NCBI GenBank assembly: GCA_950097015.1
Contig: CATNEN010000002.1
Location: forward strand, 2,604,001 to 2,668,000
DNA: 64,000 nucleotides
From: Macrostomum hystrix
Lineage: Eukaryota > Animalia > Platyhelminthes
Reading direction: 5' to 3'
A model generated the notes under the pieces. The model was not told the DNA's origin. It ran no database searches and saw nothing but the letters and a program-made list of their open reading frames with translations. Below are positions 79 through 26,900 of the stretch, piece by piece. Position numbers and translations under genes: made by a program. Every line of letters starts with the position of its first letter. The stretch's first letter is position 1.

Positions 79-82
79 AAAA

Positions 83-3000: not shown

Positions 3001-6000
3001 CTAGGCTCAGGATTGATAGTTAACTAGGCTCAGCATTGATTGTTATCTAGGCTCAACATTTTTATAGATATTAAGGCTCAGCATTGATAGATATCTAGGC
3101 TCAGCATTGATAGTTATCTAGGCTCAGCATTGATAGATATCTAGGCTCAGCATTGATAGTTATCTAGGCTCAACATTTTTATAGATATTAAGGCTCAGCA
3201 TTGATAGATATCTAGGCTCAGCATTGATAGTTATCTAGGCTCAGCATTGATAGATATCTAGGCTCAGCATTGATAGTTATCTAGGCTCAGCATTGATAGA
3301 TATCTAGGCTCAGCATTGATAGTTATCTAGGCTCAGCATTGATAGTTATCTAGGCTCAGGATTGATAGTTAACTAGGCTCAGCATTGATAGTTATCTAGG
3401 CTCAGCATTGATAGTTATCTAGGCTCAGGATTGATAGTTATCTAGGCTCAACATTTTTTTAGATATTAAGTCTCAGCATTGATAGTTATCTAGGCTCAAC
3501 ATTTTTATAGATATCTAGGCTCGGCATTGATAGTTATCTAGGCTCAGCGTGATAGTTATCTAGGCTCAACATTGATAGATATCTAGGCTCAGCATTGATA
3601 GTTATCTAGGCTCAACATTTTTATAGACATCAAGGCTCAGATTGGATTGATATCCAAGCTCTGAATTGATAGATTCCACGGGTCAGAATCGAAAGAAAAC
3701 TAGGCTCAGCATTGATATTTAACTAGGCTCAGCATTGATAGTTATCTAGGCTCAGCATTGATAGTTATCTAGGCTCAGCATTGATAGTTATCTAGGCTCA
3801 GCATTGATAGTTATCAAGGCTCAGCATTGATAGTTATCCAGGCTCAGCATTGATAGTTATCTAGGCTCAGCATTGATAATTATCTAGGCTCAGCATTGAT
3901 AGTTATCTAGGCTCAGCATTGATAGTTATCTAGGCTCAGGATTGATAGTTAACTAGGCTCAGCATTGATTGTTATCTAGGCTCAACATTTTTATAGATAT
4001 TAAGGATCAGCATTGATAGATATCTAGGCTCAGCATTGATAGTTATCTAGGCTCAGCATTGATAGATATCTAGGCTCAGCATTGATAGTTATCTAGGCTC
4101 AACATTTTTATAGATATTAAGGCTCAGCATTGATAGATATCTAGGCTCAGCATTGATAGTTATCTAGGCTCAGCATTGATAGATATCTAGGCTCAGCATT
4201 GATAGTTATCTAGGCTCAGCATTGATAGATATCTAGGCTCAGCATTGATAGTTATCTAGGCTCAGCATTGATAGTTATCTAGGCTCAGGATTGATAGTTA
4301 ACTAGGCTCAGCATTGATAGTTATCTAGGCTCAGCATTGATAGTTATCTAGGCTCAGGATTGATAGTTATCTAGGCTCAACATTTTTTTTAGATATTAAG
4401 TCTCAGCATTGATAGTTATCTAGGCTCAACACTTTTATAGATATCTAGGCTCAGCATTGATAGTTATCTAGGCTCAGCGTGATAGTTATCTAGGCTCAAC
4501 ATTTTTATAGATATCTGGGCTCAGCATTGATAGTTATCTAGGCTCAGCATTGATAGATATCTAGGCTCAGCATTGATAGTTATCTAGGCTCAACATTTTT
4601 ATAGACATCAAGGCTCAGATTGGATTGATATCCAAGCTCTGAATTGATAGATTCCACGGGTCAGAATCGAAAGAAAACTAGGCTCAGCATTGATATTTAA
4701 CTAGGCTCAGCATTGATAGTTATCTAGGCTCAGCATTGATAGTTATCTAGGCTCAGCATTGATAGTTATCTAGGCTAAGCATTGATAGTTATCTAGGCTC
4801 AGGATTGATAGTTAACTAGGCTCAGCATTGATAGTTATCTAGGCTCAGCATTGATAGTTATCTAGGCTTAGCATTGATAGTTACCTAGGCTTAGCATTGA
4901 TAGTTACCTAGGCTCAGCATTGATAGTTACCTAGGCTCAGCATTGATAGTTACCTAGGCTCAGCATTGATAGTTACCTAGGCTGAGCATTGATAGTTATC
5001 TAGGCTCAGCATTGATAGTTACCTAGGCTGAGCATTGATAGTTATCTAGGCTCAGCATTGATAGTTATCTAGGCTCAACATTTTTATAGATAACTAGGCA
5101 CAGCATTGATAGTTATCTAGGCTCAGCATTGATAGTTATCTAGGCTCAGCATTGATAGTTATCTAGGCTCAGCATTGATAGTTATCAAGGCTCAGCATTG
5201 ATAGTTTTCTAGGCTCAGCATTGATAGTTATCAAGGCTCAGCATTGATAGTTATCTAGGCTCAGCATTGATAGTTATCTAGGCTCAGCATTGATAGTTAT
5301 CCAGGCTCAGCATTGATAGTTATCTAGGCTCAGCATTGATAATTATCTAGGCTCAGCATTGATAGTTATCTAGGCTCAGCATTGATAGTTATCTAGGCTC
5401 AGGATTGATAGTTAACTAGGCTCAGCATTGATTGTTATCTAGGCTCAACATTTTTATAGATATTAAGGCTCAGCATTGATAGATATCTAGGCTCAGCATT
5501 GATAGTTATCTAGGCTCAGCATTGATAGATATCTAGGCTCAGCATTGATAGTTATCTAGGCTCAACATTTTTATAGATATTAAGGCTCAGCATTGATAGA
5601 TATCTAGGCTCAGCATTGATAGTTATCTAGGCTCAGCATTGATAGATATCTAGGCTCAGCATTGATAGTTATCTAGGCTCAGCATTGATAGATATCTAGG
5701 CTCAGCATTGATAGTTATCTAGGCTCAGCATTGATAGTTATCTAGGCTCAGGATTGATAGTTAACTAGGCTCAGCATTGATAGTTATCTAGGCTCAGCAT
5801 TGATAGTTATCTAGGCTCAGGATTGATAGTTATCTAGGCTCAACATTTTTTTAGATATTAAGTCTCAGCATTGATAGTTATCTAGGCTCAACATTTTTAT
5901 AGATATCTAGGCTCAGCATTGATAGTTATCTAGGCTCAGCGTGATAGTTATCTAGGCTCAACATTGATAGATATCTAGGCTCAGCATTGATAGTTATCTA

Positions 6001-9000
6001 GGCTCAACATTTTTATAGACATCAAGGCTCAGATTGGATTGATATCCAAGCTCTGAATTGATAGATTCCACGGGTCAGAATCGAAAGAAAACTAGGCTCA
6101 GCATTGATATTTAACTAGGCTCAGCATTGATAGTTATCTAGGCTCAGCATTGATAGTTATCTAGGCTCAGCATTGATAGTTATCTAGGCTCAGCATTGAT
6201 AGTTATCAAGGCTCAGCATTGATAGTTATCCAGGCTCAGCATTGATAGTTATCTAGGCTCAGCATTGATAATTATCTAGGCTCAGCATTGATAGTTATCT
6301 AGGCTCAGCATTGATAGTTATCTAGGCTCAGGATTGATAGTTAACTAGGCTCAGCATTGATTGTTATCTAGGCTCAACATTTTTATAGATATTAAGGCTC
6401 AGCATTGATAGATATCTAGGCTCAGCATTGATAGTTATCTAGGCTCAACATTTTTATAGATATTAAGGCTCAGCATTGATAGATATCTAGGCTCAGCATT
6501 GATAGTTATCTAGGCTCAGCATTGATAGATATCTAGGCTCAGCATTGATAGTTATCTAGGCTCAGCATTGATAATTATCTAGGCTCAGCATTGATAGTTA
6601 TCTAGGCTCAGCATTGATAGTTATCTAGGCTCAGGATTGATAGTTAACTAGGCTCAGCATTGATAGTTATCTAGGCTCAGCATTGATAGTTATCTAGGCT
6701 CAGCATTGATAGTTATCTAGGCTCAACATTTTTTTAGATATTAAGTCTCAGCATTGATAGTTATCTAGGCTCAACATTTTTATAGATATCTAGGCTCAGC
6801 ATTGATAGTTATCTAGGCTCAGCGTGATAGTTATCTAGGCTCAACATTGATAGATATCTAGGCTCAGCATTGATAGTTATCTAGGCTCAACATTTTTATA
6901 GAGATCAAGGCTCAGATTGGATTGATATCCAAGCTCTGAATTGATAGATTCCACGGGTCAGAATCGAAAGAAAACTAGGCTCAGCATTGATATTTAACTA
7001 GGCTCAGCATTGATAGTTATCTAGGCTCAGCATTGATAGTTATCTAGGCTCAGCATTGATAGTTATCTAGGCTCAGCATTGATAGTTATCAAGGCTCAGC
7101 ATTGATAGTTATCCAGGCTCAGCATTGATAGTTATCTAGGCTCAGCATTGATAATTATCTAGGCTCAGCATTGATAGTTATCTAGGCTCAGCATTGATAG
7201 TTATCTAGGCTCAGGATTGATAGTTAACTAGGCTCAGCATTGATTGTTATCTAGGCTCAACATTTTTATAGATATTAAGGATCAGCATTGATTGATATCT
7301 AGGCTCAGCATTGATAGTTATCTAGGCTCAGCATTGATAGATATCTAGGCTCAGCATTGATAGTTATCTAGGCTCAACATTTTTATAGATATTAAGGCTC
7401 AGCATTGATAGATATCTAGGCTCAGCATTGATAGTTATCTAGGCTCAGCATTGATAGATATCTAGGCTCAGCATTGATAGTTATCTAGGCTCAGCATTGA
7501 TAGATATCTAGGCTCAGCATTGATAGTTATCTAGGCTCAGCATTGATAGTTATCTAGGCTCAGGATTGATAGTTAACTAGGCTCAGCATTGATAGTTATC
7601 TAGGCTCAGCATTGATAGTTATCAAGGCTCAGCATTGATAGTTATCCAGGCTCAGCATTGATAGTTATCTAGGCTCAGCATTGATAATTATCTAGGCTCA
7701 GCATTGATAGTTATCTAGGCTCAGCATTGATAGTTATCTAGGCTCAGGATTGATAGTTAACTAGGCTCAGCATTGATTGTTATCTAGGCTCAACATTTTT
7801 ATAGATATTAAGGATCAGCATTGATTGATATCTAGGCTCAGCATTGATAGTTATCTAGGCTCAGCATTGATAGATATCTAGGCTCAGCATTGATAGTTAT
7901 CTAGGCTCAACATTTTTATAGATATTAAGGCTCAGCATTGATAGATATCTAGGCTCAGCATTGATAGTTATCTAGGCTCAGCATTGATAGATATCTAGGC
8001 TCAGCATTGATATTTAACTAGGCTCAGCATTGATAGATATCTAGGCTCAGCATTGATAGTTATCTAGGCTCAGCATTGATAGTTATCTAGGCTCAGGATT
8101 GATAGTTATCTAGGCTCAACATTTTTATAGATATTAAGGCTCAGCGTGGTAGTCATCTAGGCTCAACATTTTTATAGATAACTAGGCTCAGCATTGATAG
8201 ATTCCTAGGCTCAGCATTGATAGTTATCTAGGCTCAACATTTTTATAGATGTCAAGGCTCAGCATTGATAGTTATCCAAGCTCAGAATGGATAGATTCCA
8301 CGGGTCAGAATCGAAAGAAAACTAGGCTCAGCATTGATTGTTATCTAGGCTCAACATTTTCTAGATATTAAGGCTCAGCGTGATAGTTATCTAGGCTCAA
8401 CATATTTATTGATAACTAGGCTCAGCATTGATAGTTATCTAGGCTCAGCATTGATAGTTATCTAGGCTCAGCATTGATAGTTATCTAGGCTCAGCATTGA
8501 TAGTTATCTAGGCTCAGCATTGATAGTTATCTAGGCTCAGCATTGATAGATATCTAGGCTCAGCATTGATAGTTATCTAGGCTCAGCATTGATAGATATC
8601 TAGGCTCAACATTTTTTTAGATATTAAGGCTCAGCGTGATAGTTATCTAGGCTCAAAATATTTATAGATAACTAGGCACAGCATTGTTATTTATCTAGGC
8701 TCAAAATTGATAGATTCCTAGGCTCAACATTTTGATAGATATCTCGGCTCAGCACTGGTAGATATCTAGGCTCAGAATGGATAGATATCGTACTTTAGAT
8801 TTGATAGATATCTAGATAACTTCATTGGTTAAAAATCTATAGAAATTTAAGCTAAGAATCGATAGATATTGAAGCTCAGAATTTTTAGAAATCTAAGGTC
8901 AGAATTGATAGAATTCTAAGCTCAGAATTGATAGAAATCTTGGCTCAGCACGGGTAGATATCTAGGCTCAGTGTTGATAGATATTTAGGCTCAAAGTCGA

Positions 9001-9050
9001 TAGAAAGTTAAGCTCAGAATCAATAGATATCTTAGTTCAGAGTTGATATC
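83..9050 (+). repeat. 23-bp tandem satellite (consensus CTAGGCTCAGCATTGATAGTTAT), roughly 390 monomers
   Basis: Period 23 read directly (e.g. CTAGG at 2171 and 2194); recurrent 25-bp variant CTAGGCTCAACATTTTTATAGATAA; monomers are more degenerate at both edges. Confidence 0.97.
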
Positions 9051-9100: not shown

Positions 9101-9130
9101 AGGTCCCCAAAGGGGGGCCTAAATTGCTAG
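9101..9130 (+). mobile_element. Helitron-type 3' terminus (GC-rich hairpin followed by CTAG) closing the satellite block
   Basis: AGGTCCCC-aaa-GGGGGGCCT near-palindrome, 6 nt spacer, CTAG at 9127-9130, followed by T. Confidence 0.65.
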
Positions 9131-9133
9131 TCT

Positions 9134-9514
9134 TCTAATATACTAAAAATGAAAATCTTTCTAATATACTAAAAATGAAAATCTTGCTTGCTTGCTTGTT
9201 TGCAATCGACTAGCTCCCGAACGGCTCAACCGATTTTCGCAATTCCTTCGCCAAAAGATCACAAATGGGCCGGAATCGGTACACGTATTTTTATTAAGCT
9301 TAATTTCATTGCCAAGGGGATTAAATATTCGAAAAACAGTTTTAAATAGGCTTTTCTAATGCATTCTTGTTTACAGCTTGTGCACAGTGAGGCCTCCAGT
9401 GCCAATTTTAATGATTGCATCAGAGCCAGTTTTGATAACGAACTGATAAGAACTCCAGTGAGGCTACCCAGAGGGTAGCGAAGGCAGCTAGTCTAATATA
9501 CTAAAAATGAAAAT

Positions 9515-9547
<33 letters not shown>

Positions 9548-10849
9548 TTGCAATCGACTAGCTCCCGAACGGCTCAACCGATTTTCGCAATTCCTTCGCC
9601 AAAAGATCACAAATGGGCCGGAATCGGTACACGTATTTTTATTAAGCTTAATTCCATTGCCAAGGGGATTAAATATTCGAAAAACAGTTTTAAATAGGCT
9701 TTTCTAATGCATTCTTGTTTTCAGCTTGTGCACAGTGAGGCTCCAGTGCCAATTTTAATGATTGCATCAGAGCCAGTTTTGATAACGAACTGATAAGAAC
9801 TCACAGGGAGGCTACCCAGAGGGTAGCGAAGGCAGCTAGTCTAATATACTAAAAATGAAAATCTTGTTTGTATGTTTGTATGTTTGCAATCGACTAGCTC
9901 CCGAACGGCTCAACCGATTTTCGCAATTCCTTCGCTAAAAGATCACAATTGGTCCCGAATCGGTACACGTATTTTTATTAAGCTTAATTCCATTGCCAAG
10001 GGGATTAAATATTCGAAAAACAGTTTTAAATAGGCTTTTCTAATGCATTCTTGTTTTCAGCTTGTGCACAGTGAGGCTCCAGTGCCAATTTTTATGATTG
10101 CATCAGAGCCAGTTTTGATAACGAACTGATAAGAACTCCAGTGAGGCTACCCAGAGGGTAGCGAAGGCAGCTAGTCTTATATACTAAAAATGAAAATCTT
10201 GCTTGCTTGTTTGCAATCGACTAGCTCCCGAACGGCTCAACCGATTTTCAAAATTCCTTCGCCAAAAGATCACAAATGGGCCGGAATCGGTACACGTAAT
10301 TTTATTAAGCTTAATTCCATTGCCAAGGGGATTAAATATTCGAAAAACTGTTTTAAATAGGCTTTTCTAATGCATTCTTGTTTTCAGCTTGTGCACAGTG
10401 AGGCTCCAGTGCCAATTTTAATGATTGCATCAGAGCCAATTTTGATAAGGCACTGATAAGAACTCAAGGGAGGCTACCCAGAGGGTAGCGAAGGCAGCTA
10501 GTAATATACTAAAAATGAAAATCTTGTATGTTTGCAATCGACTAGCTCCCGAACGGCTCAACCGATTTTCGCAATTCCTTCGCCAAAAGATCACAAATGG
10601 GCCGGAATCGGTACACGTATTTTTATTAAGCTTAATTTCATTGCCAAGGGGATTAAATATTCGAAAAACAGTTTTAAATAGGCTTTCTAATGCATTCTTG
10701 TTTTCAGCTTGTGCACAGTGAGGCCTCCAGTGCCAATTTTAATGATTGCATCAGAGCCAATTTTGATAACGCACTGATAAGAACTCAAGGTAGGCTACCC
10801 AGAGGGTAGCGAAGGGCAGCTAGTCTTCTAATATACTAAAAATGAAAAT

Positions 10850-10882
<33 letters not shown>

Positions 10883-12200
10883 TTGCAATCGACTAGCTCC
10901 CGAACGGCTAAACCGATTTTCACAATTCCTTCGCCAAAAGATCACAAATGGGCCCGAATCGGTACACGTATTTTTATTAAGCTTAATTCCATTGCCAAGG
11001 GGATTAAATATTCGAAAAACTGTTTTAAATAGGCTTTCTAATGCATTCTTGTTTTCAGCTTGTGCACAGTGAGGCCTCCAGTGCCAATTTTAATGATTGC
11101 ATCAGAGCCAATTTTGATAACGCACTGATAAGAACTCAAGGTAGGCTACCCAGAGGGTAGCGAAGGGCAGCTAGTAATATACTAAAAATGAAAATCTTGC
11201 TTGCTTGCTTGCTTGCTTGTTTGCAATCGACTAGCTCCCGAACGGCTAAACCGATTTTCACAATTCCTTCGCCAAAAGATCACAAATGGGCCCGAATCGG
11301 TACACATATTTTTATTAAGCTTAATTCCATTGCCAAGGGGATTAAATATTCGAAAAACTGTTTTGAATAGGCTTTTCTAATGCATTCTTGTTTTCAGCTT
11401 GTGCACAGTGAGGCCTCCAGTGCCAAATTTAATGATTGCATCAGAGCCAGTTTTGATAACGAACTGATAAGAACTCACAGGGAGGCTACCCAGAGGGTAG
11501 CGAAGGCAGCTAGTCTAATATACTAAAAATGAAAATCTTGTTTGTATGTTTGTATGTATGTTTGCAATCGACTAGCTCCCGAACGGCTCAACCGATTTTC
11601 AAAATTCCTTTACTAAAAGATCGCAATTGGGCTGGAATCGGTACACGTATTTTTATTAAGCTTAATTCCATTGCCAAGGGGATTAAATATTCGAAAAACA
11701 GTTTTAAATAGGCTTTTCTAATGCATTCTTGTTTTCAGCTTGTGCACAGTGAGGCTCCAGTGCCAATTTTAATGATTGCATCAGAGCCAGTTTTGATAAC
11801 GAACTGATAAGAACTCACAGGGAGGCTACCCAGAGGGTAGCGAAGGCAGCTAGTAATCTAATAATATACTAAAAATGAAAATCTTGTTTGTATGTTTGTA
11901 TGTATGTTTGCAATCGACTAGCTCCCGAACGGCTCAACCGATTTTCAAAATTCCTTCGCCAAAAGATCACAAATGGGCCGGAATCGGTACACTTTTTTTT
12001 ATTAAGCTTAATTCCATTGCCAAGGGGATTAAATATTCGAAAAACCGTTTTAAATAGGCTTTTCTAATGCATTCTTGTTTTCAGCTTGTGCACAGTGAGG
12101 CCTCCAGTGCCAATTTTAATGATTGCATCAGAGCCAATTTTGATAACGCACTGATAAGAACTCAAGGTAGGCTACCCAGAGGGTAGCGAAGGGCAGCTAG
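9134..12200 (+). mobile_element. Head-to-tail array of 9 non-autonomous Helitrons (family 1, ~320-350 bp) plus a 26-bp 5' stub
   Basis: Copies 9160-9491, 9492-9839, 9840-10174, 10175-10501, 10502-10823, 10824-11174, 11175-11513, 11514-11853, 11854-12200; stub 9134-9159. Each starts T(C)TAATATACTAAAAATG, has a (CTTG)n or (TATG/TTTG)n tract, and ends GCTACCC-aga-GGGTAGC hairpin + 8-9 nt + CTAG, the canonical Helitron TC...hairpin-CTRR signature. Confidence 0.9.
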
Positions 12201-12430
12201 TAATAATTGTACTGAAAATTAAATGCCTGCTTGCTTACTGCAATCGTGTAACTCCGGAAGGGCTTTACCGACTTTTATAACTCCTTGACTAAAATATAGC
12301 TATTCACTTCTATAGAACATTGGTTGTCAGCCAATATGTGATTATGCTTGGGGCAAACAGGTGGGGGCGTATCTGCTTTTTGAGAGGACAAGTGCGATTT
12401 GCATTAGAGAATTGTATAAATCCTGAAATC
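12201..12430 (+). mobile_element. 5' part of a second Helitron-like family (family 2)
   Basis: Starts directly after the CTAG of family-1 copy 9; TAATAATTGTACTGAAAATTAAATGCCTGCTTGCTT resembles the family-1 start; homologous to 40883-41170. Confidence 0.6.
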
Positions 12431-12928
12431 TTGAAGTTACCTATTGCTAGTAAAAATAATCAAATATATGTTATTCATTTAAATTTATAAAACGTGCTAC
12501 TGCATCAAAGGTCATTAAATATATAATGCCGAAGGTTTGAACTGGTACATTGATAATAGCACCAATGAACTCGGAATTCGTAATTTTGTCAGGGCTTCAA
12601 AGCTAGTTCTCCTTTACTCCGTCCCTCCCTCAAAGGGGGAATCTATTTGCGCGTTACTTGCGCGTTACTTGTACAAGCCCTTGTGTGCAGTGCATTAGAT
12701 TAACAACTATTATCGTTTCTAGTGTATTTTCTATCGAAACGTACTAAAACTAATGCGTTGCATATACTTGCAGCTGACTCACACATTGGTTTCTTGTCTT
12801 CAACACTCATAATTTCGTGTCTACCTACTTCCTTTTAAATGACTAGCCGCTTATTTAGCAGGCATTAGCTTGCAGCCATTATTTAAACACTTGAAGGTTA
12901 GATTAGGCTAGGTTTGCTTAGGTTAGAT

Positions 12929-12934
12929 TTTATT
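12929..12934 (-). promoter_or_regulatory. Candidate polyadenylation signal (AATAAA) of the 3-exon gene
   Basis: tttatt on plus, ~120 nt downstream of the stop codon at 13055; not present in the homologous stretch near 41510-41530. Confidence 0.45.
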
Positions 12935-13054
12935 AGATTATAAAATAAAGATTAAACGCTTTCTAGTTATAGCTCGTGGACAGCACATCTGACGGCGTCT
13001 GTTAGACGGCGTGATAAACTACTCAGTGGAATACGTTAGTCAGTTGAGCAACTC

Positions 13055-14463
13055 CTACAGCACAAGGAATCCAGCTGCAATCAGCTTCTTGGCCTCCGAG
13101 TAAAAGCAGTTCCTGGCGCAGTTGTCCTCCTCAATATTGCACTGGCACTGCTCTGACAGGTCTGTCAGCACTTTGAAGTTTGCCAGACCTTCGCTCAGCT
13201 TGGCGGGGTCCAGCGAGATCTGGAGGTCGCCGCAGCCCTTGAACTGGAGCAGGCATGGCATGAAGTAGGTCTCCATGGCGACAACAGTGCTCTGCTTGGC
13301 GACATCAACATCGGTGCCCTGTCTTAAGGCATGCCAGACAGCAGACATTAGGGTGGCCTTCACTTGGTAGTTGTAGTAGCAGCCACGGAGGCATTGTATT
13401 TCGGACAGGTCGCACTTGCATCGCTCGGGCAGATCCAGGCTATTCAGGATGCGGACGAAAATGCGAGCCTGCTTGAAGTCTAGGACACCGCTTGGAGGAC
13501 AATTGATGTCACGCAGGATGCAGTCCTGCAGCTGGCTATCGCTAAAGGTGGGCTGCGAGGAACGAAGTTTTCTTGCTTGCTTGCCTGAAACAAACAGTCA
13601 AACGGCGATACAGAGCTGGGCGTGCATCTTGAACTGCTCTATGTTGGCAGAGGCTTAAATGCATGAAAGTTAACAGACGCCGTCATTCATTCTGCCCCCG
13701 GACTTCACATTGCCGTACGGACCAACTCATGTGTTCTCAAATATCGATTGGTTTAATCATTTTTCTACTTTTCTTGTCAACCAATTACACATATTTATTC
13801 GCAAAACCTGTTTCATTTAGTTTCAAAAAATAAACCTATTGATGTACCTAGGAGTGCGAAACGCGTCGTACAACTAATTTAATGGTGGTTTTCGCTTTCA
13901 TCTTTATCTTACTTGCCAAGCGAGAAACTTTACCAGACATCTGAGATCTGTTATTGGATTCAAAAATTATGTACAACAAATCCCTTAAAATTGTATCTCA
14001 TGAACAAAACTCACGTGGGACCCTAACAAGCGGTACAGGATTCGAGTATCTCCTTGTGCCAGACGGATCCACACCAGAACACCTGTACCACTGATTCTCC
14101 CTAAATGGTCTGTGATAGTTGGTGCTCAGGGTAGAGGAAAAAGTTTTGTGCAAAATCACCGGCGGCCCGATGGGATCATTGCGCTCATCGTTAAAGTGAA
14201 ACTTGATGTCTCGGAGGCGCACATCATGAGTGCAGTTCACGAATTTGAACCCGGGGAACTGTGACGGTCCGACGGTCACGGCTGAAAATTGAAGACAGAA
14301 AAAACTTGCCAGTAATCGGAAGCTATTGTGAATAACAACAGAACGTACTAATTTGAATGGGGTCGTTGACGGCCGGATCTTGGGCAAGTTTTGGACAAGC
14401 GCTCATTGGCGACAACAGAAGGCCAAGGAATAGGCAGGCTAGGACAACTGCTGGCTGGCCCAT
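13055..14463 (-). CDS. 3-exon gene for a ~303-aa secreted protein: signal peptide + Ig-like domain + two tandem 6-Cys repeats ('gene A')
   Basis: Exon 1 14463-14349 (MGQPAVVLACLFLGLLLSPMSACPK..., donor GTACGT); exon 2 14281-14015 (VTVGP...NCTHDV...WYRCSG...PVPLVRVP, ttttcag acceptor, GTGAG donor); exon 3 13584-13055 (tttgtttcag acceptor, open to TAG). All junctions are phase 1 and give an uninterrupted 912-nt CDS. Confidence 0.8.
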
Positions 14464-14571
14464 GGCTTTGCACTGCTGGTTGAAAGTAATTTCTAATTAA
14501 TGTCTAACAAATCCTCAAAGATAGGTAGGAAGGTAGAACTCCGCCTAAACTTGCCTAGATCTTTGTGTCCA

Positions 14572-14690
14572 TATTTATAGCAACGGGTCTTATAGTGGAC
14601 CCGTTCACACTGCTGAGGTGGAGAGCGAGGCGACAACCAATAGAGCGAGTGCTTCGCTGGTCGCTATTGGCTGGAGCTAAGGCATGCGCA
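14572..14690 (-). promoter_or_regulatory. Core promoter of gene A: TATA box (TATAAATA 14579-14572), two opposed CCAAT boxes, GCATGCGCA element
   Basis: Motifs lie 110-230 nt upstream of the ATG and are all conserved in the paralogous promoter at 41996-42115. Confidence 0.6.
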
Positions 14691-14865
14691 TCAGGAATAT
14701 CTGGAGTCGAGTTCAACCCTCTTGTTGAGGGAGGCGCACTGGTCAGCGCCCCGTACAGTTTTAGCCCATTTACTAGCATGTTTTGCCCCCCTTCGGGGAG
14801 CAGAAATATTTTTAATTTGTCTTGTAGAAACTTTTTAGCAGCTGTATTTTCAGCTTTTTTAAGCT

Positions 14866-15362
14866 ACAATGATCACCCAGTTGACAATGATCCCCCAGTT
14901 GACGATGATGCCCCAGTTGACAATGATCCCCCAGTTGACAATGATCCCCCGGTTGACAATGATCCCCCAGTCGACAATGATTCCCCAGTTGACAATGATC
15001 CCCCAGTTGATGATGATCCCCCAGTTGACAATGTTCCCTAAGTTAATGATGATACCGCAGTTGACAATGATCGCCCAGTTGACAATGATCCCCCAGTTGA
15101 CAATGATCCCCCAGTTGACAATGATCCCCCAGTCGGCAATGATCCCCCAGTTAACAATGATCCCCCAGTTGACAATGATCCCCAGTTGATGATGATCCCC
15201 AGTTGACAATGATCCCCCAGTTGACAATGTTCCCCCAGTTGACAATGATCCCCATGCAGTTGATGATGATCCCCCAGTTGACAATGATCCCCCAGTTGAT
15301 AATGATCCCCCATTTAATGATCACTCCCCATTGATGATGATGCCCATTTGACAATGTTGCCC
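14866..15362 (+). repeat. 18-bp minisatellite (GATCCCCCAGTTGACAAT)n
   Basis: Direct reading of ~27 units; it explains the repetitive DPPVDN / MIPQLT / WGIIVN ORFs in the track. Confidence 0.95.
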
Positions 15363-15515
15363 AGTTGAATTTTTATATTAGCTTGTTATGTAGAAAATTG
15401 AGAAGAACAACAATTAAATGAATATTAGGCAAAATATTATATATCATTATGACGTTATGAGATAACAAACTCAAAATGTCAATAATTAAATTCAATGACA
15501 AAAGAAACATTTTGC

Positions 15516-18410
15516 CATGATTCAAACTCTGGTTCACTATGATTCAAACTCTGGTTTAGCCATGATTCAAACTCTGGTTTAGCCATGATCCAAACTCTGG
15601 TTTAGCCATGATTCAAACTCTGGGTTAGCCATGATTCAAACGCTGGTTTAGCCATGATTCAAACGCTGGGTTAGCCATGATTCAAACGCTGGTTTAGCCA
15701 TGATTCAAACTCTGGTTTAGCCATGATTCAAACTCTGATTTTGCCATGATTCAAACTCTGGTTTAGCCATGATTCAAACTCTGGTTTAGCCATGATTCAA
15801 ACTCTGGTTTAGCCATGATTCAAACTCTGGGTTAGCCATGATTCAAACGCTGGTTTAGCCATGATTCAAACTCTGGGTTAGCCATGATTCAAACGCTGGT
15901 TTAGCCATGATTTCAACGCTGGTTTAGCAATGATTCAAACGCTGGTTCAGCCATGGTTTTAACTCTGGTTTAGCAATGATTCAAAATCTGGTTTAGCCAT
16001 GATTCAAACTCTGGGTAAGCCATGATTCAAACTCAGGTTTAGCCATGATTCAAACTCTGATTTTGCCATGATTCAAACTCTCGGTAAGCCATGATTCAGA
16101 CTCTGGTTTAGCAATGATTCAAACTCTGGTTTAGCCATGATTCAAACTCTGGTTTAGCCATGATTCAAACTCTGGTTTTGCCATGATTCAAACTCTGGTT
16201 TAGCCATGATTCAAACTCTGGTTTAGCCATGATTCAAACTCTGCTTTAGCCATGATTCAAACTCTGGTTTAGCCATAATTCAAACTCTGGTTTAGCAATG
16301 ATTCAAAATCTGCTTTAGCCATGATTCAAACTCTGGTTTAGCCATGATTCAAACTCTGGTTTAGCCATGATTCAAACTCTGATTTTGCCATGATTCAAAC
16401 TCTGGTTTAGCCATGATTCAAACTCTGGTTTAGCCATGATTCAAACTCTGCTTTAGCCATGATTCAAACTCTGCTTTAGCCATGATTCAAACTCTGGTTT
16501 AGCCATGATTAAAACTCTGGTTAGCTATGATTCAAACTCTGGTTTAGCCATGATTAAAACTCTGGTTTAGCCATGATTCAAGCTCTGGTTTAGCCATGAT
16601 TGTAACGCTGGGTTAGCCATGATTCAAAATCTGGTTTAGCCATGATTCAAACTCTGCTTTAGCCATGATTCAAACTCTGGTTTAGCCATGATTCAAACTC
16701 TGGTTTAGCCATGATTCAAACTCTGGTTTAGCCATGATTAAAACTCTGGTTAGCCATGATTCAAACTCTGGTTTAGCCATGATTCAAACTCTGGTTTAGC
16801 CATGATTAAAACTCTGGTTAGCTATGATTCAAACGCTGGTTTAGCCATGATTCAAACTCTGGGTTAGCCATGATTCAAAATCTGGTTTAGCCATGATTCA
16901 AAATCTGGTTTAGCCATGATTCAAACTCTGCTTTAGCCATGATTCAAACTCTGGTTTAGCCATGATTCAAACTCTGGTTTAGCCATGATTCAAACTCTGG
17001 TTTAGCCATGATTCAAACTCTGGTTTAGCCATGATTCAAACTCTGATTTTGCCATGATTCAAACTCTCGGTAAGCCATGATTCAGACTCTGGTTTAGCAA
17101 TGATTCAAACTCTGGTTTAGCCATGATTCAAACTCTGGTTTAGCCATGATTCAAACTCTGGTTTAGCCATGATTCAAACTCTGGTTTAGCAATGATTCAA
17201 AATCTGCTTTAGCCATGATTCAAACTCTGGTTTAGCCATGATTCAAACTCTGGTTTAGCCATGATTCAAACTCTGATTTTGCCATGATTCAAACTCTGGT
17301 TTAGCCATGATTCAAACTCTGGTTTAGCCATGATTCAAACTCTGCTTTAGCCATGATTCAAACTCTGCTTTAGCCATGATTCAAACTCTGGTTTAGCCAT
17401 GATTCAAACTCTGGTTAGCTATGATTCAAACTCTGGTTTAGCCATGATTAAAACTCTGGTTTAGCCATGATTCAAGCTCTGGTTTAGCCATGATTGTAAC
17501 GCTGGGTTAGCCATGATTCAAAATCTGGTTTAGCCATGATTCAAACTCTGCTTTAGCCATGATTCAAACTCTGCTTTAGCCATGATTCAAACTCTGGTTT
17601 AGCCATGATTCAAACTCTGGTTTAGCCATGATTCAAACTCTGGTTTAGCCATGATTAACTCTGGTTTAGCCATGATTCAAACGCTGGTTTAGCCATGATT
17701 TCAACGCTGGTTTAGCAATGATTCAATCGCTGGTTCAGCCATGGTTTTAACTCTGGTTTAGCTATGATTCAGACTCTGGTTTAGCAATGATTCAAAATCT
17801 GGTTTAGCCATGATTCAAAATCTGGTTTAGCCATGATTCAAACTCTGCTTTACCCATGATTCAAAATCTGGTTTAGCCATGATTCAAAATCTGGTTTAGC
17901 CATGATTCAAAATCTGGTTTAGCCATGATTCAAAATCTGGTTTAGCCATGATTCAAACTCTGCTTTAGCCATGATTCAAACTCTGGTTTAGCCATGATTC
18001 AAACTCTGGTTTAGCCATGATTCAAACTCTGGTTTAGCCATGATTCAAACTCTGGTTTAGCTATGATTCAAACTCTGCTTTAGCCATGATTCAAACTCTG
18101 GTTTAGCCATGATTCAAACTCTGGTTTAGCCATGATTCAAACTCTGGGTTAGCCATGATTCAAACGCTGGTTTAGCCATGATTTCAACGCTGGTTTAGCA
18201 ATGATTCAAACGCTGGTTCAGCCATGGTTTTAACTCTGGTTTAGCTATGATTCAGACTCTGGTTTAGTAATGATTCAAAATCTGGTTTAGCCATGATTCA
18301 AACTCTGGGTAAGCCATGATTCAAACTCTGGTTTAGCCATGATTCAAACTCTGCTTTAGCCATGATTCAAACTCTGGTTAAGCTATGATTCAGACACTGG
18401 TTTTGCTATG
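15516..18410 (+). repeat. 23-bp tandem satellite (GCCATGATTCAAACTCTGGTTTA), roughly 125 monomers
   Basis: Period 23 (GATTC at 15541 and 15564). Confidence 0.97.
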
Positions 18411-18479
18411 CAAAATTGAATTAAAAGTTTCCCCTTTCTTCAAAATTAAATAAAAATTTATCGCTTCGCATCCATCACT

Positions 18480-18615
18480 ACTGACTGACAATTAGTTTAG
18501 ATGATTTGACGCAGTGCAGAGTCGAACCAGGGACACTTCGCCTAGCCTAGCCTAACCTATTCCTAGTGCCTACACATCGGCTATTCCGACTGTTGGTTAG
18601 TGGGTGCAAAAATCA
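18480..18615 (-). mobile_element. tRNA-derived SINE-like head
   Basis: A-box-like TAGCCGATGTGTAGGC (18583-18568) and B-box GGTTCGACTC (18528-18519) on minus strand. Confidence 0.45.
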
Positions 18616-18719
18616 GCCTTATAAAATGAATTCTCAAAATTCAGGGTTTGTACAATGAAGTAAGAAAATAGAGTACACTCAGTCTCGCGGTTGGTTGTGT
18701 ACATTTATTTCCAATTTGT

Positions 18720-19027
18720 CTCCAGAGTGCAGGCTTCAAATTCAATCAGCTATAGGGGTTGTTGCGCAATTTGACGATGCAATTCTAATTCAGTGGCAGT
18801 GAGTGAAATTCTCAATAGGCCAATATATTTTGACCTTTGAAAAATGGTCAAAAAGCATGTTTTTTGAATATTTAATCCCCTTAGCAATAAAGTTAAGCTT
18901 AATACAAATACGTGTATAATTGCCCCCATATTTAGCATCTTTTGGTGAAGAAATTGTGAAAATCGGTTGAGCCGTTCGGGAGAAAATCAATTACAAGCAA
19001 GCAACCAAGCAACCAACCAAGCAACCA
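18720..19027 (-). mobile_element. Helitron family-1-related fragment, inverted, truncating the Crypton ORF
   Basis: (GGTT/GCTT)n tract followed by CTCCCGAACGGCTCAACCGATTTT...AAGGGGATTAAATATTC, nearly identical to the array monomers; the distal part differs. Confidence 0.75.
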
Positions 19028-19644
19028 TTAGTAGTAAGACCAGCGTGTTCTTCACCATCTCGAAGGGCAAAATGGAGCCCATTTAAATAAAAGAGAGTTC
19101 TCAGCAACTTCTTCGGTGTGTCATCACTGAGCACGGTATCCCACAGCTTCTCCTCATCAGTCGTACTGATCACGTACCGAAAGAAGTCGACGCGTCGCAC
19201 GTCCGAGAAAGTCTGCTCCAATCCACCGACCGAAGATACGAGTGTACCGGCAGGATATTTTGAGCCGTCCGTACGAGTGACTTTGTGTGTGCACCTTGAC
19301 AGCAGAGAATTGATTTCGGAGTCGTTCATGTCTTGCAGAGGCACAGTGCATTCGATGCCAGACTCTTGAAGCCATCGATTGAACGCTTGAACGGCCCACT
19401 TGTTGCTTTTTAGAGTGTTTTGAGCCTTCGTGCTCCGATTAAGATTGCGAATTTCATCCAATGCTGCCTCAGAATTGCCACGGACTTTTCGAAGTTGCTG
19501 GAGAGCAAACGGGTCGCGGCAATCCAACCCTTCACATTGTATTTCTTCCAAATCTACTGCCGAAAGGCGATTAGGATCGTAGTCTCCAACGAAGTCGGCG
19601 CCATAGTCTACCAGTGGGTTTAAAATGGAAGAATTTTGCTCCAT
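19028..19644 (-). pseudogene. 5' half of a Crypton-like tyrosine recombinase (DUF3504-type), truncated
   Basis: KWAVQAFNRW, Y-x-x-x-TL, TLFYLNGLHFALRDGEEH motifs; same sequence as 43449-44063 but cut after HAGLTT by the Helitron fragment. Confidence 0.8.
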
Positions 19645-20008
19645 CTAAACACTGCTGAGAAAATAGTCTTTAAGTCGGGTGAGAGCTGCCAAAAAGATAT
19701 AAAAATTGCCCATAGACAAAATCAGCGATGGAATGAAGGAAAAGTATACTTTTTTGCAATTGAATTCGCCGAAACTGCAAAACAATTCCCCATAGAAGCC
19801 CATGTGGTCTAAAAATAGTAAGCCCATAGAAATTAAGCTAAAAGTCGAGATTGAATTCGCCGAAATTGCATTTGAATTCGCACTGGTGACGTGTCTATAT
19901 GTTGCTAAAATCGCAGGAACTTAAATTCGGCAGTCCTTCTCTATCCTGTTTTCAAAATGCTGAGAGGACTGTACAAGCCAGTATCGACGACGGATAGATT
20001 GCGATGAG

Positions 20009-20257
20009 ATGGCTGGCTCCTGCTTAAAAACTGCCGTCGGACGCTTGCTCTCACAGCCTGAAGTTCGTGCGGAACTGCTCAATACGGCTGCGGCAGCAAA
20101 CCTTGGCATCACATTGCACACCTGGAGAATGGGAATTCTGAGACGTGAGGTGACGGTCGCCCTACAGCAGATCACACAGCAGAAGTGCTTGCAGTGGGCT
20201 AATCACACGGCAACCTACTTGAATCGCTGCCTGAATCATGAAGACATTTTGGCATGA
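20009..20257 (+). pseudogene. C-terminal remnant of an IS630/Tc1-like transposase
   Basis: SCLKTAVGRLLSQPEV...WRMGIL...ITQQKCLQW...RCLNHEDI aligns by eye with SCLKATIKRQLSLPQV...WRILVL...ITPVKCGGW...RCVAGEDI at 27743-28012, which follows the LPYSPFLNP DDE motif. Confidence 0.7.
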
Positions 20258-20827
20258 TTAATTGCTCTTTTCTTTGATCGTTCGGTTGAATTCATTCTAC
20301 TCGTACATCAGTTCGCAAACTTTGTTTCCTCTTTGATTGTTTCCCCTTCGAAGCCTTTTGTCCTGTCAAATGAATACAAGCCATTGTATCACGCTGGCGC
20401 GTGTTAGATGCACGATTTACTGTGCGTCTAATGTAGTTGTCTATGGCAATTTTCTATCTGAGTAAAAACAACAAGCGTGCGTCTAACGCGTGTAATGCAC
20501 GGAAAGTGAGTATATTTTAATAAGTATACTTCTGCTACAAGTACAACGAACGAACAACATGGAATTGTGTAAACAAGGTAGACTGTGTAGACGCCTGACC
20601 CAAGTGATTTCCGTTTTAAGTCATCGAAAATGCTTTACATCGCTTATTGTGTATTCACATCGTGGACCCCCCGTCCTTTCGGTCCCTACACAGGCTTTTG
20701 TAAATCCCGATTACAGTTACAGTAACAGGAACGGTTAGCAGGTGCACAGACAGGGAAAGCGAATGAAGATGAAGGCGTTCTGCATTTGGAAGTTCAGTAT
20801 GGGAAAAGTTCATTGCTATTACTCACT

Positions 20828-21510
20828 CTAAGAATTGAACGTGCAGTTGTTGACAGTGTTGTAGAAGTTGTAAACCACAGTTGGCTTCTTCTTGGCGTCA
20901 TCACTTGGCGTCCCACCAGCAACGTCCGACGTGTCAGAAATAATCAGTGACTGGCTCATGACGGTAGAAGAGTCTTTCATAATCACGTCTTGCATGGAAT
21001 CATCCTTGTGTAGTGCAGAAGCCAAGCTGACCGACATGTCTCGCATTTCACCGTCCCTTCTGGAGCCAAAGCGTAAGTAGCGTTCTACAGTTCGCGTCTG
21101 CTTATGGCCAGTCACTTTGCAGATATCAGACACACTGTAACCTGCGTTAGATAGCTCCTTTATTACCGTGGATCGAATGCAGTGCGCAGTGTATGACTTT
21201 GATAAATTCGCCTTCTTTGAAATGACGGTCATCAGCTGGCCCAAGGGATTCACACCAATTGCCTTGTTCGGGCAGTACCATGCTCCATTTGCCCAACCAG
21301 TCTTTTTCGGCAGTAAGAAGAAAGGATATCTTTTCACCGTCTCCGAACTGCTTGATGGAATGGATTGCTCACGCTGAGCTAAATAGAGCTTCATAGCTTC
21401 CACAGGGCAGCGGCTTCTGTCTGGCAACGCACTCATAACAGCTTGCTTGACATAGTCACACGAGTTCCTGGAGAGTTCTTTGCCAACATTCTTTACTGTT
21501 CTATGGGCTT
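20828..21510 (-). pseudogene. 3' half of a second, divergent Crypton-like tyrosine recombinase
   Basis: RCPV, IGVNPL, YTAHCIRST (HxxR), VTGHK and ERY catalytic motifs; 5'-truncated; absent from the duplicate copy (~44805). Confidence 0.8.
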
Positions 21511-23419
21511 TTTCTATGGGCTTACTATTTTTAGACCACATTGGCTTCTATGGGGAATTGTTTTGCAGTTTCGGCGAATTCAATTGCAAAAAAGGTATAA
21601 TAAAACGTTTCAGGGATTTTTTCGAATAAATTCCGGAAAGGAAAGTAGTATAAGATAGATATGTGATGGTTTTACAGCCTGCGCTGCATCGACTTGACGC
21701 TGTCGTTACATATGCCCATGTCTTTAAATGTCATGGTTTAATAACAGAACTTAGCTTTACGTTCATAAACAATTAATAAATTGTGATGACCACGTCAGTT
21801 TTTTATTGAGCCTTTTTCTTGTGTTGTTTTACTTATTTGTGTGGATAAAATTAAAACTTTGAGGAATTCTATTCTTGTCCAAAGGATGGAGAATTGGGGA
21901 AAACGTCATTATTGGAGATAGTTACGATACTAGCAACTATGGGGAGCTTTCGGGGAGCTTATCGGGAGCCAATGGGGAGCTTGTAGCCGCATAGATAAAT
22001 CTGTGCTATTACGAAAGGTTTTCACTCTTTCAACCAATGCTACCCTTCTGATAAATCACACTAACCCTCTATAACTCATGCTACTCCCACGATAATTCAT
22101 TATAATGTCTCGATAATTTAGCTACATTTCAATAGATCATGCAACCCTCTCAATAGTTTATGCAGCACCCTCGAATACTTACGTATGCTTTTGCATTTAC
22201 TTGATGTATCACGCCTGCTATCAATAGATATCTAGCTCTATTATTTGTTAGTTTCGTGTTTTCTTAAAAAAATAACTTTGGAAATATTAAAAAATATTCT
22301 TAACTGTCCTGCTTAAAAACACGCCTAATTCTAAAAAACAATTATGCCATGCATCAGCTATGAGTAAAATATTTCTCCTTGTCTTGAATTCAAAAATGAT
22401 TGTAGCAATGCTCAAAAACGTTTCTTTCGTTTCGAAAATAAAAAACGCTAACAGCAAGTATGCTCGAACAGTTTTCATTTAGTGCTTGCAAGAATGCTTG
22501 AAAGAAAGTTAAAATATATAATGAAAGAAACGCTTATACCTTTGCTTAAGGCATTTTCTTATATTTGTGAATCTAAAAACGCTGGCAGCGAAAATTCTTT
22601 CCTCGGTTTTGTATCGAAAAACACTTGTTGCTGCAGTCGAAAAATGCTTTATTCTATTCTTAAAGCGAGAAGAATTATTAAGCTAACAAACATTTGCCTC
22701 GACTATCTCGCGCTAATCAAAAGCGCTTACTGTTACCAGTTAACTGTACCTGAAAAGACAAATAAAGAAAAATAATAATAATAATACTGTTATCTACGTT
22801 TTTAACTGATGATAATAAAATATTATCAACAGCTCCAATAGACTTCGAGCTAGATGAAAAAACGGCACAATGATTGAAGTCGAGACAATTTGTGACGATA
22901 TATGGACTGCAGTTTTCAGGGATAGAAAGGAGGAGGAAGGGTCTGACTAGCATTGAGAAATATGAAAGTAAAATCTGTGTAACTTACAGAAGTTTTTATT
23001 ATGTCAATAAAAATGTTAATATTTTGATAAAGAATTCTACCTGTCTATAATTCAGCTACTCGTTCGATAGTCCATAATCAGTCCTCGATAATTTATGCTA
23101 CCCTTCAATTAATCATGCCGCCCCTTAATAAGACATGCTACCCCCTCGATAAATTAAGCTACTCCTTGACAATTCATGCTTTCCCCTCAAAAAACCATGC
23201 TACCTCTGCAAGCCTTGCAAATGCCTTGCAAATACAATGTTCTGAAGTGTATTTGCAACTAAATCGAAAAAATATATAGGATGGCACTATTTTGAAGGAT
23301 AGCATGAAAATTGAAGTTTATACCGCAAGATGTCAAGATAAAAAATGTTATGCAAAGAAGGGGAAAGCATCAAATTATCGATGGGTTAGCTTGATATATC
23401 GAGGAACAGCATGATTTAT

Positions 23420-23680
23420 AGACGGGACAGCATAGTTATCGACGGGACAGATAAATTATCGACGGGACAACATAAGTTATCGACGGGACAGATAAATTAC
23501 CGACGGGACAGATGAATTACCGACGGGACAACATAAATTATCGACGGGACAACATAAATTATCGACGGGACAACATAAATTATCGACGGGACAACATATA
23601 TTATCGACAGGACAGATATATTATCGACGGGACAGATATATTATCGACGGGACATAAATTATCGACGGGAAAGCATAAAT
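23420..23680 (+). repeat. 20/21-bp minisatellite (ACATAAATTATCGACGGGACA)n
   Basis: Period 21 (CGACG at 23521 and 23542); reverse complement of the surrounding repeat family. Confidence 0.9.
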
Positions 23681-23719
23681 GATGTTACCCAACTCTGCAA
23701 CTCAACCTCGTGATCTTAA

Positions 23720-23915
23720 GCACTGTCATCCCTGATCCCAAACACTGTGATCCCTGATCCCAAACAATGCCATCCCTGATCCCAAACAATGTCATCCCTG
23801 ATCCTAAACACTGTCATCCCTGATCCTAAACACTGTCATCCCTGATCCTAAACACTGTCATCCCTGATCCTAAACACTGTCATCCCTGATCCTAAACACT
23901 GTCATCCCTGATCAC
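23720..23915 (+). repeat. 22-bp minisatellite (CACTGTCATCCCTGATCCTAAA)n
   Basis: Period 22, ~9 units; duplicate at ~48080-48270. Confidence 0.9.
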
Positions 23916-26900
23916 TGATCAATGCTGTCCGGTCAGTAATTTATGCTACACCCTAAATTATTCATGTTATCCTTTTTAAAATCTTTCTACTGCATTGAAA
24001 AAGCATGCTACCGTCTGAATATATCATGCTACCCTCTCAAAAAACCAAGCGACCACAACGATAAATAATGCAACCCCTTTGATAATACATTCTAACCCTT
24101 ACAATTAACTGCGATAATTTTAAGGCGAGTTGATAAATCATGCTACTCGATTGATAATTTATTATTCCCCCTTTGTTTAACTTTTTTATCAATTTGTAGT
24201 TCTTGCTTTCTGACGAAAATATTTCGTCTGTTTAGTATAAAAAACACGTGCCGCTAAAATTAAAATATATTCTTTTTTAACTGCGAGAAAAGTAGTAATC
24301 AAGCAAACAGTTAATCTTGCTTTAAAGGTAGCTAATCAAAAGTGCTTACTATTTTTCTTGAACCCAATTGAAGCCTGATAAATTAAATACAAATCAACAG
24401 TTACTTGCGCTTTTAACTTTCGGTGATAGAAGATAAGAAGAAAAAGGCAGTAACAAAAATAACACTGAAATGTGACCTGCATTCTGCAAAAAATAAATGT
24501 ACTTTACTACGGAGCTAGATAAAAAGAAAGCGGCAAAAGGATCGAAGTCTTAACACTCGTTTACAAGTCTTTTCAAGGTTTGACAATATTTAGGCTGCAG
24601 TTTTAAGCGATAGAAAGGAAGAGGAGAGGTCGCGCTAGCATTGTGCATAATAGAAGTCTAAACCTTGAAATCTACTAAGTTTTACTTATTCTAATGAAAT
24701 CACTCAATCCGCTAAGAGACCAATATCACTATCGTCATATATAATCGCAGTGACGAACTCCTATTCGATTGTCGGTATCAGGCCGACCCTCTGTTCTGCT
24801 AATACACTCGCGGGCGAGAAAAAGCAGCGACGCTATCCCATTCAATTGAGTATCGGCCCTCGGCGATTCAAAAGATAAAAATAAGGAAAAATTAAAGCAA
24901 AAATGATTGCTTTTCGAATATTTAATGCCTTTAGAATTAATGAAGTGCCTAGAAAATTAACGTGTACCATCTCGTTAAGAGGGCGAATCATTATTCTTTC
25001 TTCAGAGAAAGATTCGCGAAAATCAGACAATGCGTTTGCCAGATCAACGACAAGACCACTTTTTTACTTTGAGTGAATTGACACAGATGGACAATTTTCA
25101 CTTTTAGTATATAAGACTAGCAAACTGAGCCCCTTGGAGAGAAGAAGTTCATGCTTTAAAGCCATGAGAAGAAGAATAATTTTAAATATGCAACTTCACT
25201 ACTCTGATTAACTTTACTTGATATCTTTTCGATAAATCATGCTACCCTTTGATATATCATGTTATCCCTTGACAATGCTGCTACCCGATCAAAAAAATCT
25301 TGCTACCCCTAGCCCTTTATGCGAATATCACAATGAATCATGCCGCTCTCAACATTTGATGAAGTTCCGTCACTAATAAATGCTGTCCTCGATAAATTAT
25401 GCTACCCGTGATACATTTATGCTACACAATTAATTAATCATGCTTACCCTTGTAAAATCTCGCTACCGTCTCATGTACCGTCTCAAATCTCAATTTGTCA
25501 TGCTACCCCTCGATAAATAATTGAGACCTCTTCGATAATACATTCTAACCGATTTCGATAAATAATGATACCCTTCGATAATTCACGCTTTTCATCAATA
25601 ATTCATTCTTTCCCCTTATTAAATCTTGCTTTCCGCTCAATAGTTTATGATTATCACTCGATAGTATTGATTTTCCTAAATTATTCGTGCTCCCTATCGA
25701 TAACTCATGCTTTCCCTTCGACAATGCATGCTTGCCCTTCACTAATTCATGTTTTCCGTTCGATAATTCCTGCTTTCCGTTCGATAATTTCTGCTTTCAA
25801 TTTGATAATTAATGATTTCTATTTGATAAAACTCATGCTTCCCTCGATAATTCATGTTTTCCTTCATTTAATTTATGATTCCCATTCGATAATTTAGATT
25901 TCCCTAAATCCGTTATCTATAATTAATGCTTTACCCTCGATAACTCGTGCTTACCCTCGAAAACTTATTCTTCCCCTCGATATTTCCCACTTTTCTTTTC
26001 CAAAATTCATGCTTCCCTTGGATATATCATGCTTTTTATCGATTATTATGCTACCCGCTCAATAATTTATGTTTTTCTTAAAAAAATCTGGCTTTTTCGT
26101 CGATAATATATGCTTTCCATCGATAAGTCGTGCTTCTCCTCGATAATTCATTCTCCATTTCCGATAAATGCTACCCCACTCGAAAATTCAGGCTTCCCCT
26201 CGATAACTCATGCTCTTTCCTCAATAATTCACTTCACCCCTCGATACTTTTTGCATTTCCCTAGATGTGTCAGGCTTTTCCCTCCAGAAATTTATGCTTA
26301 CCCTTCGATAATTCGTGCTTTCCCTCGATATCTTATTCTTCTCCTCAATATTTCACGCTTTGCCTTTCGATAATCGATGCTTCCCCACTCGATAATTCAT
26401 GCTTTTCCATGATAGTTCAGGCTTCCACCTTGATGATTCATGCTCCTTCCTCGATAATTCATGCTTACACCTCGATATGTCGTGCTTTTTTCATCGATAA
26501 TTAATGCTGCCCTATCGATAATTTACGATTTTCTAAAAAATCATGCCATTTTTTCGATAGTACTTGCTTTACCTCGATAATTTATTTTTTCTTTCAATAA
26601 TTTATTCTTACCTCGATGCTTCTTCCTCGATTACACAGTTTACCTCCTCGATATGTCATGGCATTCCCTCGATAATTCCCGCTTTACCCTCAATAAACCA
26701 TTCTTTTCCCTCGATAATCCAGGCTTCAACCTTGAAATTTCGTGCTTGCTGTTTCCTCGATAACTTTTGCTGTCCGGGAAATACGAGTAATTCATGCTGC
26801 ACCCTTTAATTGATAATGCTATGCCTCATAAAATCATTAAAAATGCTACTGTCTAAAAATTTACGTTACTTCGATAAGTTATTCTTTTCCTTGGTATTTA

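Follow-up and report, generated by a model that had tools for sequence, protein, structure and literature searches.

In a 64,000-nucleotide stretch of the flatworm Macrostomum hystrix (contig CATNEN010000002.1, positions 2,604,001 to 2,668,000; the window), we found two loci on the minus strand, A and B, in which one promoter and signal-peptide block (the cassette) stands in front of different protein bodies. We hold with middling confidence that gene A is a new chimera: A and B would be tandem paralogues of a gene for a secreted laminin-IV/immunoglobulin (Ig) protein, and a copy of a Cys-repeat gene would have been inserted into intron 2 of A. Gene A would encode a new secreted protein of ~303 amino acids, consisting of a signal peptide, an Ig-like domain and two Cys repeats. 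Spliced models of A and B were predicted from sequence and relatives were searched exon by exon.

Genes A and B and their shared cassette

By self-alignment, 12194-14771 was homologous to 40876-42202 in five collinear blocks, with A/B identities of 95.5% in the promoter, 88% in the 5' leader, 91.5% in exon 1, 98.5% in intron 1, 85-87% in the intron-2 blocks and 90% in a Helitron head within intron 2. A first-pass annotation of this DNA had described the two loci as collinear; this holds for the five blocks, although that description hid a 944-bp segment found only in A and the unrelated middles at 12450-12780 (A) and 41251-41400 (B), which break the homology. The TATA and CCAAT motifs that it had seen in both promoters are present, with TATAAA at 14579 and CCAAT at 14670 in A (promoter 14570-14771) and at 42003 and 42094 in B (promoter 41994-42202). 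Exon 1 is likewise shared (coding part 14349-14463 in A, ending in a phase-1 donor, and 41779-41884 in B), and the signal peptide is the same in both loci across 22 codons, with three synonymous and no replacement differences (P 0.02 under neutrality). Three indels, of 9, 195 and 12 nt, distinguish the coding parts of the two cassettes, and each preserves the frame, unlike most non-coding indels; the promoter and intron 1 are far more conserved than intron 2 (Fisher P 3e-5). An Rfam scan gave no match, and neither did a metagenome scan with exon 1.

Several inverted repeats lie around the B promoter. A perfect 18-bp hairpin at 42135-42175 is degenerate in A, and a 13-bp fold-back at 42190-42219 stands exactly where A/B homology ends, which is suggestive of template switching. 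It should also be noted that a repeat of ~85 bp is inverted between intron 2 of B (41304-41390) and the region upstream of the B promoter (42459-42543), again with no Rfam match; the latter copy directly follows a TATA-like motif at 42427.

The predicted coding exons of A (14463-14349, 14281-14015 and 13584-13055) give 303 open codons with GT-AG sites in phase 1. The in-phase splicing to an Ig exon and a Cys-repeat exon that had been proposed for A is borne out by this predicted frame, except that the Ig-like exon is exon 2 of the shared cassette itself and not a separate downstream exon. Exon 2 (89 codons) is a probable Ig/FN3-like beta-sandwich, as judged from a Cys-Cys motif and a low-confidence model (predicted local distance difference test score, pLDDT, 51) with matches to Ig/FN3 sandwiches at Z 6-7; it had no Pfam match, and a sequence search of the PDB gave nothing clear. 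The acceptor of exon 3, at 13584, scored highest of all acceptors within 600 nt. A candidate polyadenylation signal, AATAAA, lies on the minus strand at 12929-12934, 120 nt past the stop; its counterpart in B reads AATGAG.

Exon 2 of B (41648-41707) has lost 195 and 12 nt in frame, which leaves 60 nt, and a laminin-EGF exon (40821-40748) comes next in phase 1, both as first annotated. The body of B (exons 3-18, 30784-40821, minus strand) has an open frame and encodes laminin EGF, laminin IV (B), EGF and multiple Ig domains, with Pfam matches to PF00053, PF00052 and Ig families. The predicted model comprises at least 1,180 codons in 18 exons with no stop, including an 11-nt microexon at 30784-30794 which is required for the open frame, and at least one more Ig exon lies near 30066-29900. 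No other signal-peptide exon was found near the 18-exon frame, and a search with exon 12 of B gave no match. Among solved structures, perlecan matched the laminin IV exon best (E 0.005). Like Perlecan/UNC-52 (HSPG2), B has laminin EGF and laminin IV followed by a run of Ig domains; however, where perlecan has LDL-receptor class A repeats and either two or three modules of laminin IV, the model of B contains a single laminin IV and no LDLa exon, and B has divergent Ig domains and a tandem duplication. No laminin-G end was seen in B, as in plc among the planarian genes plc / phmus-1 (PMC6453901). B appears to be a perlecan-like derivative, for which we do not claim orthology with perlecan.

A 20-kb region, 19027-39016, is repeated at 43446-64000 with 97-99.4% identity and contains most of gene B and a tyrosine-recombinase (YR; Crypton-like) element. 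The two cassettes lie in the same register of a tandem unit of ~25 kb. The YR open reading frame is whole at 44070-42880 and cut by a Helitron head at 19027, so with respect to the repeated unit A occupies the position of B, except that the Helitron has replaced 1.2 kb of flank at locus A. This shared register supports the view that A and B are tandem paralogues; allelic haplotypes were ruled out, as the divergence is too great and the bodies differ. A second copy of the B body, B' (53714-64000, minus strand), is 99.4% identical and is cut by the end of the window before its 5' exons. The B' exons are open, and five of the seven exonic differences between the copies alter an amino acid. The duplication of 19027-39016 may be very recent, or may represent two haplotypes assembled in tandem.

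The segment found only in A

The A-only segment (12993-13936, minus strand) carries the Cys-repeat gene copy that forms exon 3 of A. Global alignment showed that B retains both flanks of the segment, in agreement with the earlier statement that exon 3 is missing in B. The 8-bp sequence TCAGATGT occurs in two perfect copies in A, as a direct repeat (a putative target-site duplication) on the left (13937-13944) and the right (12985-12992) of the segment, and once, with a 7/8 match, at the empty site in B (41570-41577, minus strand). The probability that two random breakpoints carry an exact 8-bp repeat is about 1.5e-4; the repeat would therefore reflect either an insertion in A, as its target duplication, or a deletion in B, as its microhomology.

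Exon 3 (13055-13584) encodes two 6-Cys helical repeats and is homologous to stand-alone secreted proteins of Macrostomum lignano. An exhaustive search found relatives only among M. lignano proteins (174-193 amino acids, E 1e-11 to 1e-12, 27% identity), which have their own signal peptide and two Cys repeats and are without Ig; a word-index search with the exon gave no match. These Mlig029205-type proteins (PAA82461.1, A0A1I8G7C1) share with exon 3 the two repeats with their C-I-L..N-C-P and C-x-C..C..C pattern but, unlike A, are stand-alone and intron-containing and lack Ig. Two such genes stand in tandem in M. lignano (L001, 2069-2796 and 10001-10740), with the same two-intron structure and an open reading frame of a long terminal repeat retrotransposon between them. 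The model of the exon-3 domain has six helices (pLDDT 78) and found no convincing fold match (best Z 6.5, no saposin), and atlas searches and a sequence search of the PDB gave nothing clear; exon 3 had no Pfam match. The UniRef saposin-B label of the relatives was not reproduced by Pfam or by fold search, where a missing match is no proof of another fold; evidence for a toxin identity was not found, and neither was a paper naming Mlig029205.

Upstream of exon 3 and in frame with it is a signal-peptide-like remnant (13583-13627, minus strand), whose end forms the exon-3 acceptor. It begins at an ATG at 13627 with a hydrophobic stretch of 15 codons, has a stop at 13600-13598 and continues directly into exon 3, so that its sole lesion lies in the part which is now intronic. 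From this ATG to the first Cys there are 35 codons, compared with 26 and 39 in the M. lignano relatives. None of 100 ATG-initiated windows of 15 codons from local introns matched its hydrophobicity, and its GC content (0.53) exceeds those of all 15 other intron ends (0.22-0.47). The 310 nt upstream of the ATG are AT-rich. The segment lacks the two phase-0 introns found in the M. lignano genes, although these, at only 27% identity, need not represent its direct parent. The foreign family, the signal-peptide remnant and the absent introns make the segment resemble a gene copy that once stood alone.

A perfect 15-bp inverted repeat flanks the Cys-repeat copy (left arm 13671-13685, minus strand; right arm 12990-13004, plus strand), where 0.03 would be expected. 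The right arm has 3 nt in common with the right direct repeat and adjoins a second partial copy at the junction, an arrangement that would fit templated repair synthesis. In the predicted pre-mRNA (12960-13720) the arms pair and enclose exon 3 (z -2.25), which might affect its splicing. We also considered a Pack-TIR element (PMC8277862), in which, as here, gene sequence lies within a pair of inverted repeats and direct repeats, and rejected it since the ends do not fit: the left arm is 250 nt in from the end of the segment, the arm flanks differ and no target duplication directly flanks the arms.

As we reconstruct it, the ancestral gene would have had a signal peptide, an Ig-like exon, laminin EGF/IV and an Ig array, and its tandem duplication would have given A and B. 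Intron 2 of A would then have received a DNA copy of a Cys-repeat gene without introns, an insertion that would have left the 8-bp duplication. The signal-peptide sequence of the insert would have gained a stop and would now provide the pyrimidine tract and the AG of the phase-1 acceptor, and the transcript of A would end at AATAAA (12934). A train of Helitrons with satellite, growing at an old Helitron junction in intron 2 of A, may have cut off the laminin body and pushed it away. B would have kept the laminin/Ig body, lost most of the first Ig domain by in-frame deletions and later been duplicated again to give B'. Exon shuffling between old tandem paralogues was one of two options left by the first-pass annotation, and the common register and the probable gain of exon 3 by A support it. 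That annotation had also considered the direction of change undecidable from the window, which was too pessimistic: the filled and empty sites, the foreign gene family, the signal-peptide remnant and the tandem register like that of B point to A as the derived copy.

Several observations weigh against this history. The polarity of A and B rests on signatures internal to the two loci. Identity is 97-99% in the flanks of the tandem unit and 85-98% in the cassettes, which implies several rounds of duplication or conversion. The Ig domain of A exon 2 has no detectable similarity to the Ig exons of B; the comparison was not significant and we dropped it as support. The acceptor of B exon 3 is weak (0.7 bits), although other B acceptors are equally low. 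Codon usage of the remnant is indistinguishable from that of intron (p 0.34) and was also dropped, and pyrimidine tracts translate as hydrophobic by nature, which biases the hydrophobicity test. Finally, no A-run precedes the right repeat, and the absence of a 3' poly(A) tract makes direct retroposition and the copying of an intronless gene at the DNA level equally likely.

An alternative that we consider unlikely is that exons 1 and 2 of A are a stranded 5' fragment and the Cys-repeat copy a young pseudogene, with a coincidental in-phase junction and with B as an ordinary member of its family. The phases would agree by chance in one case in three, the insert's signal peptide is broken, no transcript or database protein matching A was found, and A is surrounded by Helitron trains and satellites; the 15-bp inverted repeat, whose arms can pair around exon 3 in the predicted pre-mRNA, also fits a pseudogene. 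A stranded fragment accounts less well for a frame in which all 303 codons are open, for an exon-3 acceptor that is the strongest locally, for the AATAAA after the stop and for the much better conservation of the promoter and intron 1 than of intron 2.

Helitron sequences and other proposed origins

Helitrons have a 5' TC, a 3' stem-loop followed by CTRR and no target duplication (PMC4224331). The first-pass annotation had placed a Helitron-like start after CAGCTAG in both loci, and we found Helitron-type heads there, at 12201 and 40883 on the plus strand, both of which align with a unit of the neighbouring Helitron train over ~110 nt. The head in A is without its first bases, and that in B begins with TC; by the features above, both are Helitron-derived in sequence. 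Homology after the shared head ends ~250 bp on, without a hairpin, at CTAG in A and CTGA in B (degenerate head and ~250-bp relic at 12201-12449 in A, intact head and relic at 40883-41250 in B), which fits a small decayed element of ~250 bp within intron 2. About 19 nt before the B head (40864-40882, plus strand) look like the 3' terminus of a Helitron unit lying upstream and end in CTAG (p about 0.009), suggesting that the ancestor already had the CTAG-TC junction.

The train itself (9131-12200, plus strand) consists of nine head-to-tail non-autonomous units of ~330 bp with hairpin and CTAG ends; it has ten junctions with variable head lengths and would have grown at a site of the CTAG-TC kind. 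The region 9127-12200 contains two Helitron families, as a satellite-carrying element ends at 9130 before the nine units begin. Locus A (12201-14771) stands between this train and one or more satellite-carrying Helitrons on the minus strand (14773-19027). The YR element is cut short at 19027 by the head region of this satellite-carrying sequence. The strong hairpin and CTAG end at 14773-14800 also belong to the satellite-carrying sequence, a separate element on the opposite strand, and A/B homology stops there.

The first-pass annotation had regarded the cassette as bounded by a Helitron, which is right for the head on one side, while no convincing 3' end closes the other. The weak candidate for a Helitron-type terminator in A (14717-14742, plus strand) has a 5-bp hairpin, 7 nt, and CTGG followed by T; in B, where the perfect 18-bp hairpin stands, there is no CTRR. 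Helitron insertions between an A and a T with unrelated flanks were not found at the two loci: the heads follow CTAG, and A and B share sequence past both ends, for 29 nt beyond the candidate terminator and for about 19 nt upstream of the head, so that homology extends beyond the Helitron start even though the Helitron-type head is real. Because of this shared sequence, A and B are not independent Helitron insertions, and transduction of the cassette by a Helitron is unproven since no convincing 3' end closes it. The other option of the first-pass annotation, donation of a Helitron-bounded promoter and signal peptide to perlecan-like exons, is weakened by the same two observations but may still hold as an older event. 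The Helitron head fits an intronic relic that marks the end of homology and is not a demonstrated vehicle.

Such an older event, which we regard as quite unlikely and which is not needed for the explanation, would be a Helitron that captured the promoter and exons 1-2 in reverse and landed ~55 nt from the laminin-EGF acceptor, restarting a 5'-truncated perlecan fragment; A would have arisen later by duplication and insertion. The intact TC head in B does lie 42-55 nt from that acceptor, and bat Helitrons favour promoters and first exons, including in reverse orientation (PMC4224331). The hairpin and CTGG|T at 14717-14742 are on the same strand as the head, 29 nt from the end of homology, and the pattern occurs 0.14 times per strand-kb; however, this terminator has a stem of only 5 bp, was found post hoc and has no CTRR in B. 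The homology beyond both ends also speaks against capture, as do the shared head's own CTRR end after ~250 bp and the fact that only two copies are known, both in tandem register.

We consider it improbable that B arose from an A-like three-exon gene, with exon 3 deleted between the 8-bp repeats by recombination or microhomology, the polyadenylation signal lost and splicing extended into adjacent laminin/Ig exons. B retains both exon-3 flanks, has AATGAG in place of AATAAA and is the copy with deletions in exon 2, as this would predict; yet this origin would require an insertion followed by a precise excision, and it would leave an intact body of 1,100 codons for which the window contains no older promoter or signal exon. 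Because exon 3 is a foreign stand-alone gene, we demoted this deletion. It is just as doubtful that the 2.5-kb block is a mobile, Helitron-delimited promoter and signal-peptide cassette which stands before several unrelated bodies genome-wide and collects inserted genes as terminal exons, a reusable generator of secreted proteins.

Elsewhere in the window, self-alignment and repeat scans identified a 23-bp satellite at 82-9048. Broken or truncated tyrosine-recombinase/DUF3504 (Crypton-like) elements lie at 42880-44070, 19027-19644 and 20831-21547, and short inverted repeats are found near them (19745-19832 vs 21511-21599). A 33-bp G-rich minisatellite (45290-46007) shows expansion in the second copy of the 20-kb duplication but not in the first. 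Translations alone indicated a decayed Ty3/gypsy-like retrotransposon fragment on the plus strand of a B intron (32600-34500), which the duplicate also has.

Comparable systems and significance

The proposed origin of A resembles that of chimeric gene duplicates (Katju 2012, PMC3449122; Drosophila Sdic), in which a frame is made from a partial tandem duplicate and a second gene. As in Katju's definition, there are at least two donors for A, at least one of them genic: exons 1-2 are shared with B and exon 3 is homologous to an unrelated family. Unlike in those examples, the donor of exon 3 would be a complete gene for a small secreted protein, and the signal-peptide sequence of that gene was apparently recycled as an acceptor.

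In Schistosoma japonicum, the members of one gene family have a core promoter and signal sequence in common; the family is dispersed on 34 contigs, linked to RTE/Perere retroelements and expressed (PMC3434034). Like A and B, it is from a flatworm and has one promoter and signal module before different bodies, with repeats flanking its source locus; however, A and B are two tandem copies with a Helitron relic and recognisable domains, predicted from sequence. Bat Helibat elements have captured promoters and first exons and later received nested retrogenes (PMC4224331). Locus A resembles them in having a Helitron 5' head beside a reverse block of promoter, exon 1 and intron, with a gene copy nested between direct repeats, but A and B differ from them in that no 3' terminator is convincing, the copies do not form a dispersed family of many members and their flanks are common to both.

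Events of this class, namely chimeric duplicates and shared signal-sequence modules of flatworms, have already been described. What is particular here is the legible pair of filled and empty sites and the apparent reuse of a signal peptide as an acceptor. In exon 3 of A there would be a disulfide-rich helical domain, so far uncharacterised, for which no fold match is known. If the predicted junctions are used, A would be a young animal chimeric gene whose history can be followed within a single window, from a tandem duplication, through an insertion that made a target duplication and has a preserved empty site and the conversion of a signal-peptide sequence into an acceptor, to isolation by a Helitron train. 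If true, this would illustrate how the many lineage-specific secreted and surface proteins of Macrostomum are built.

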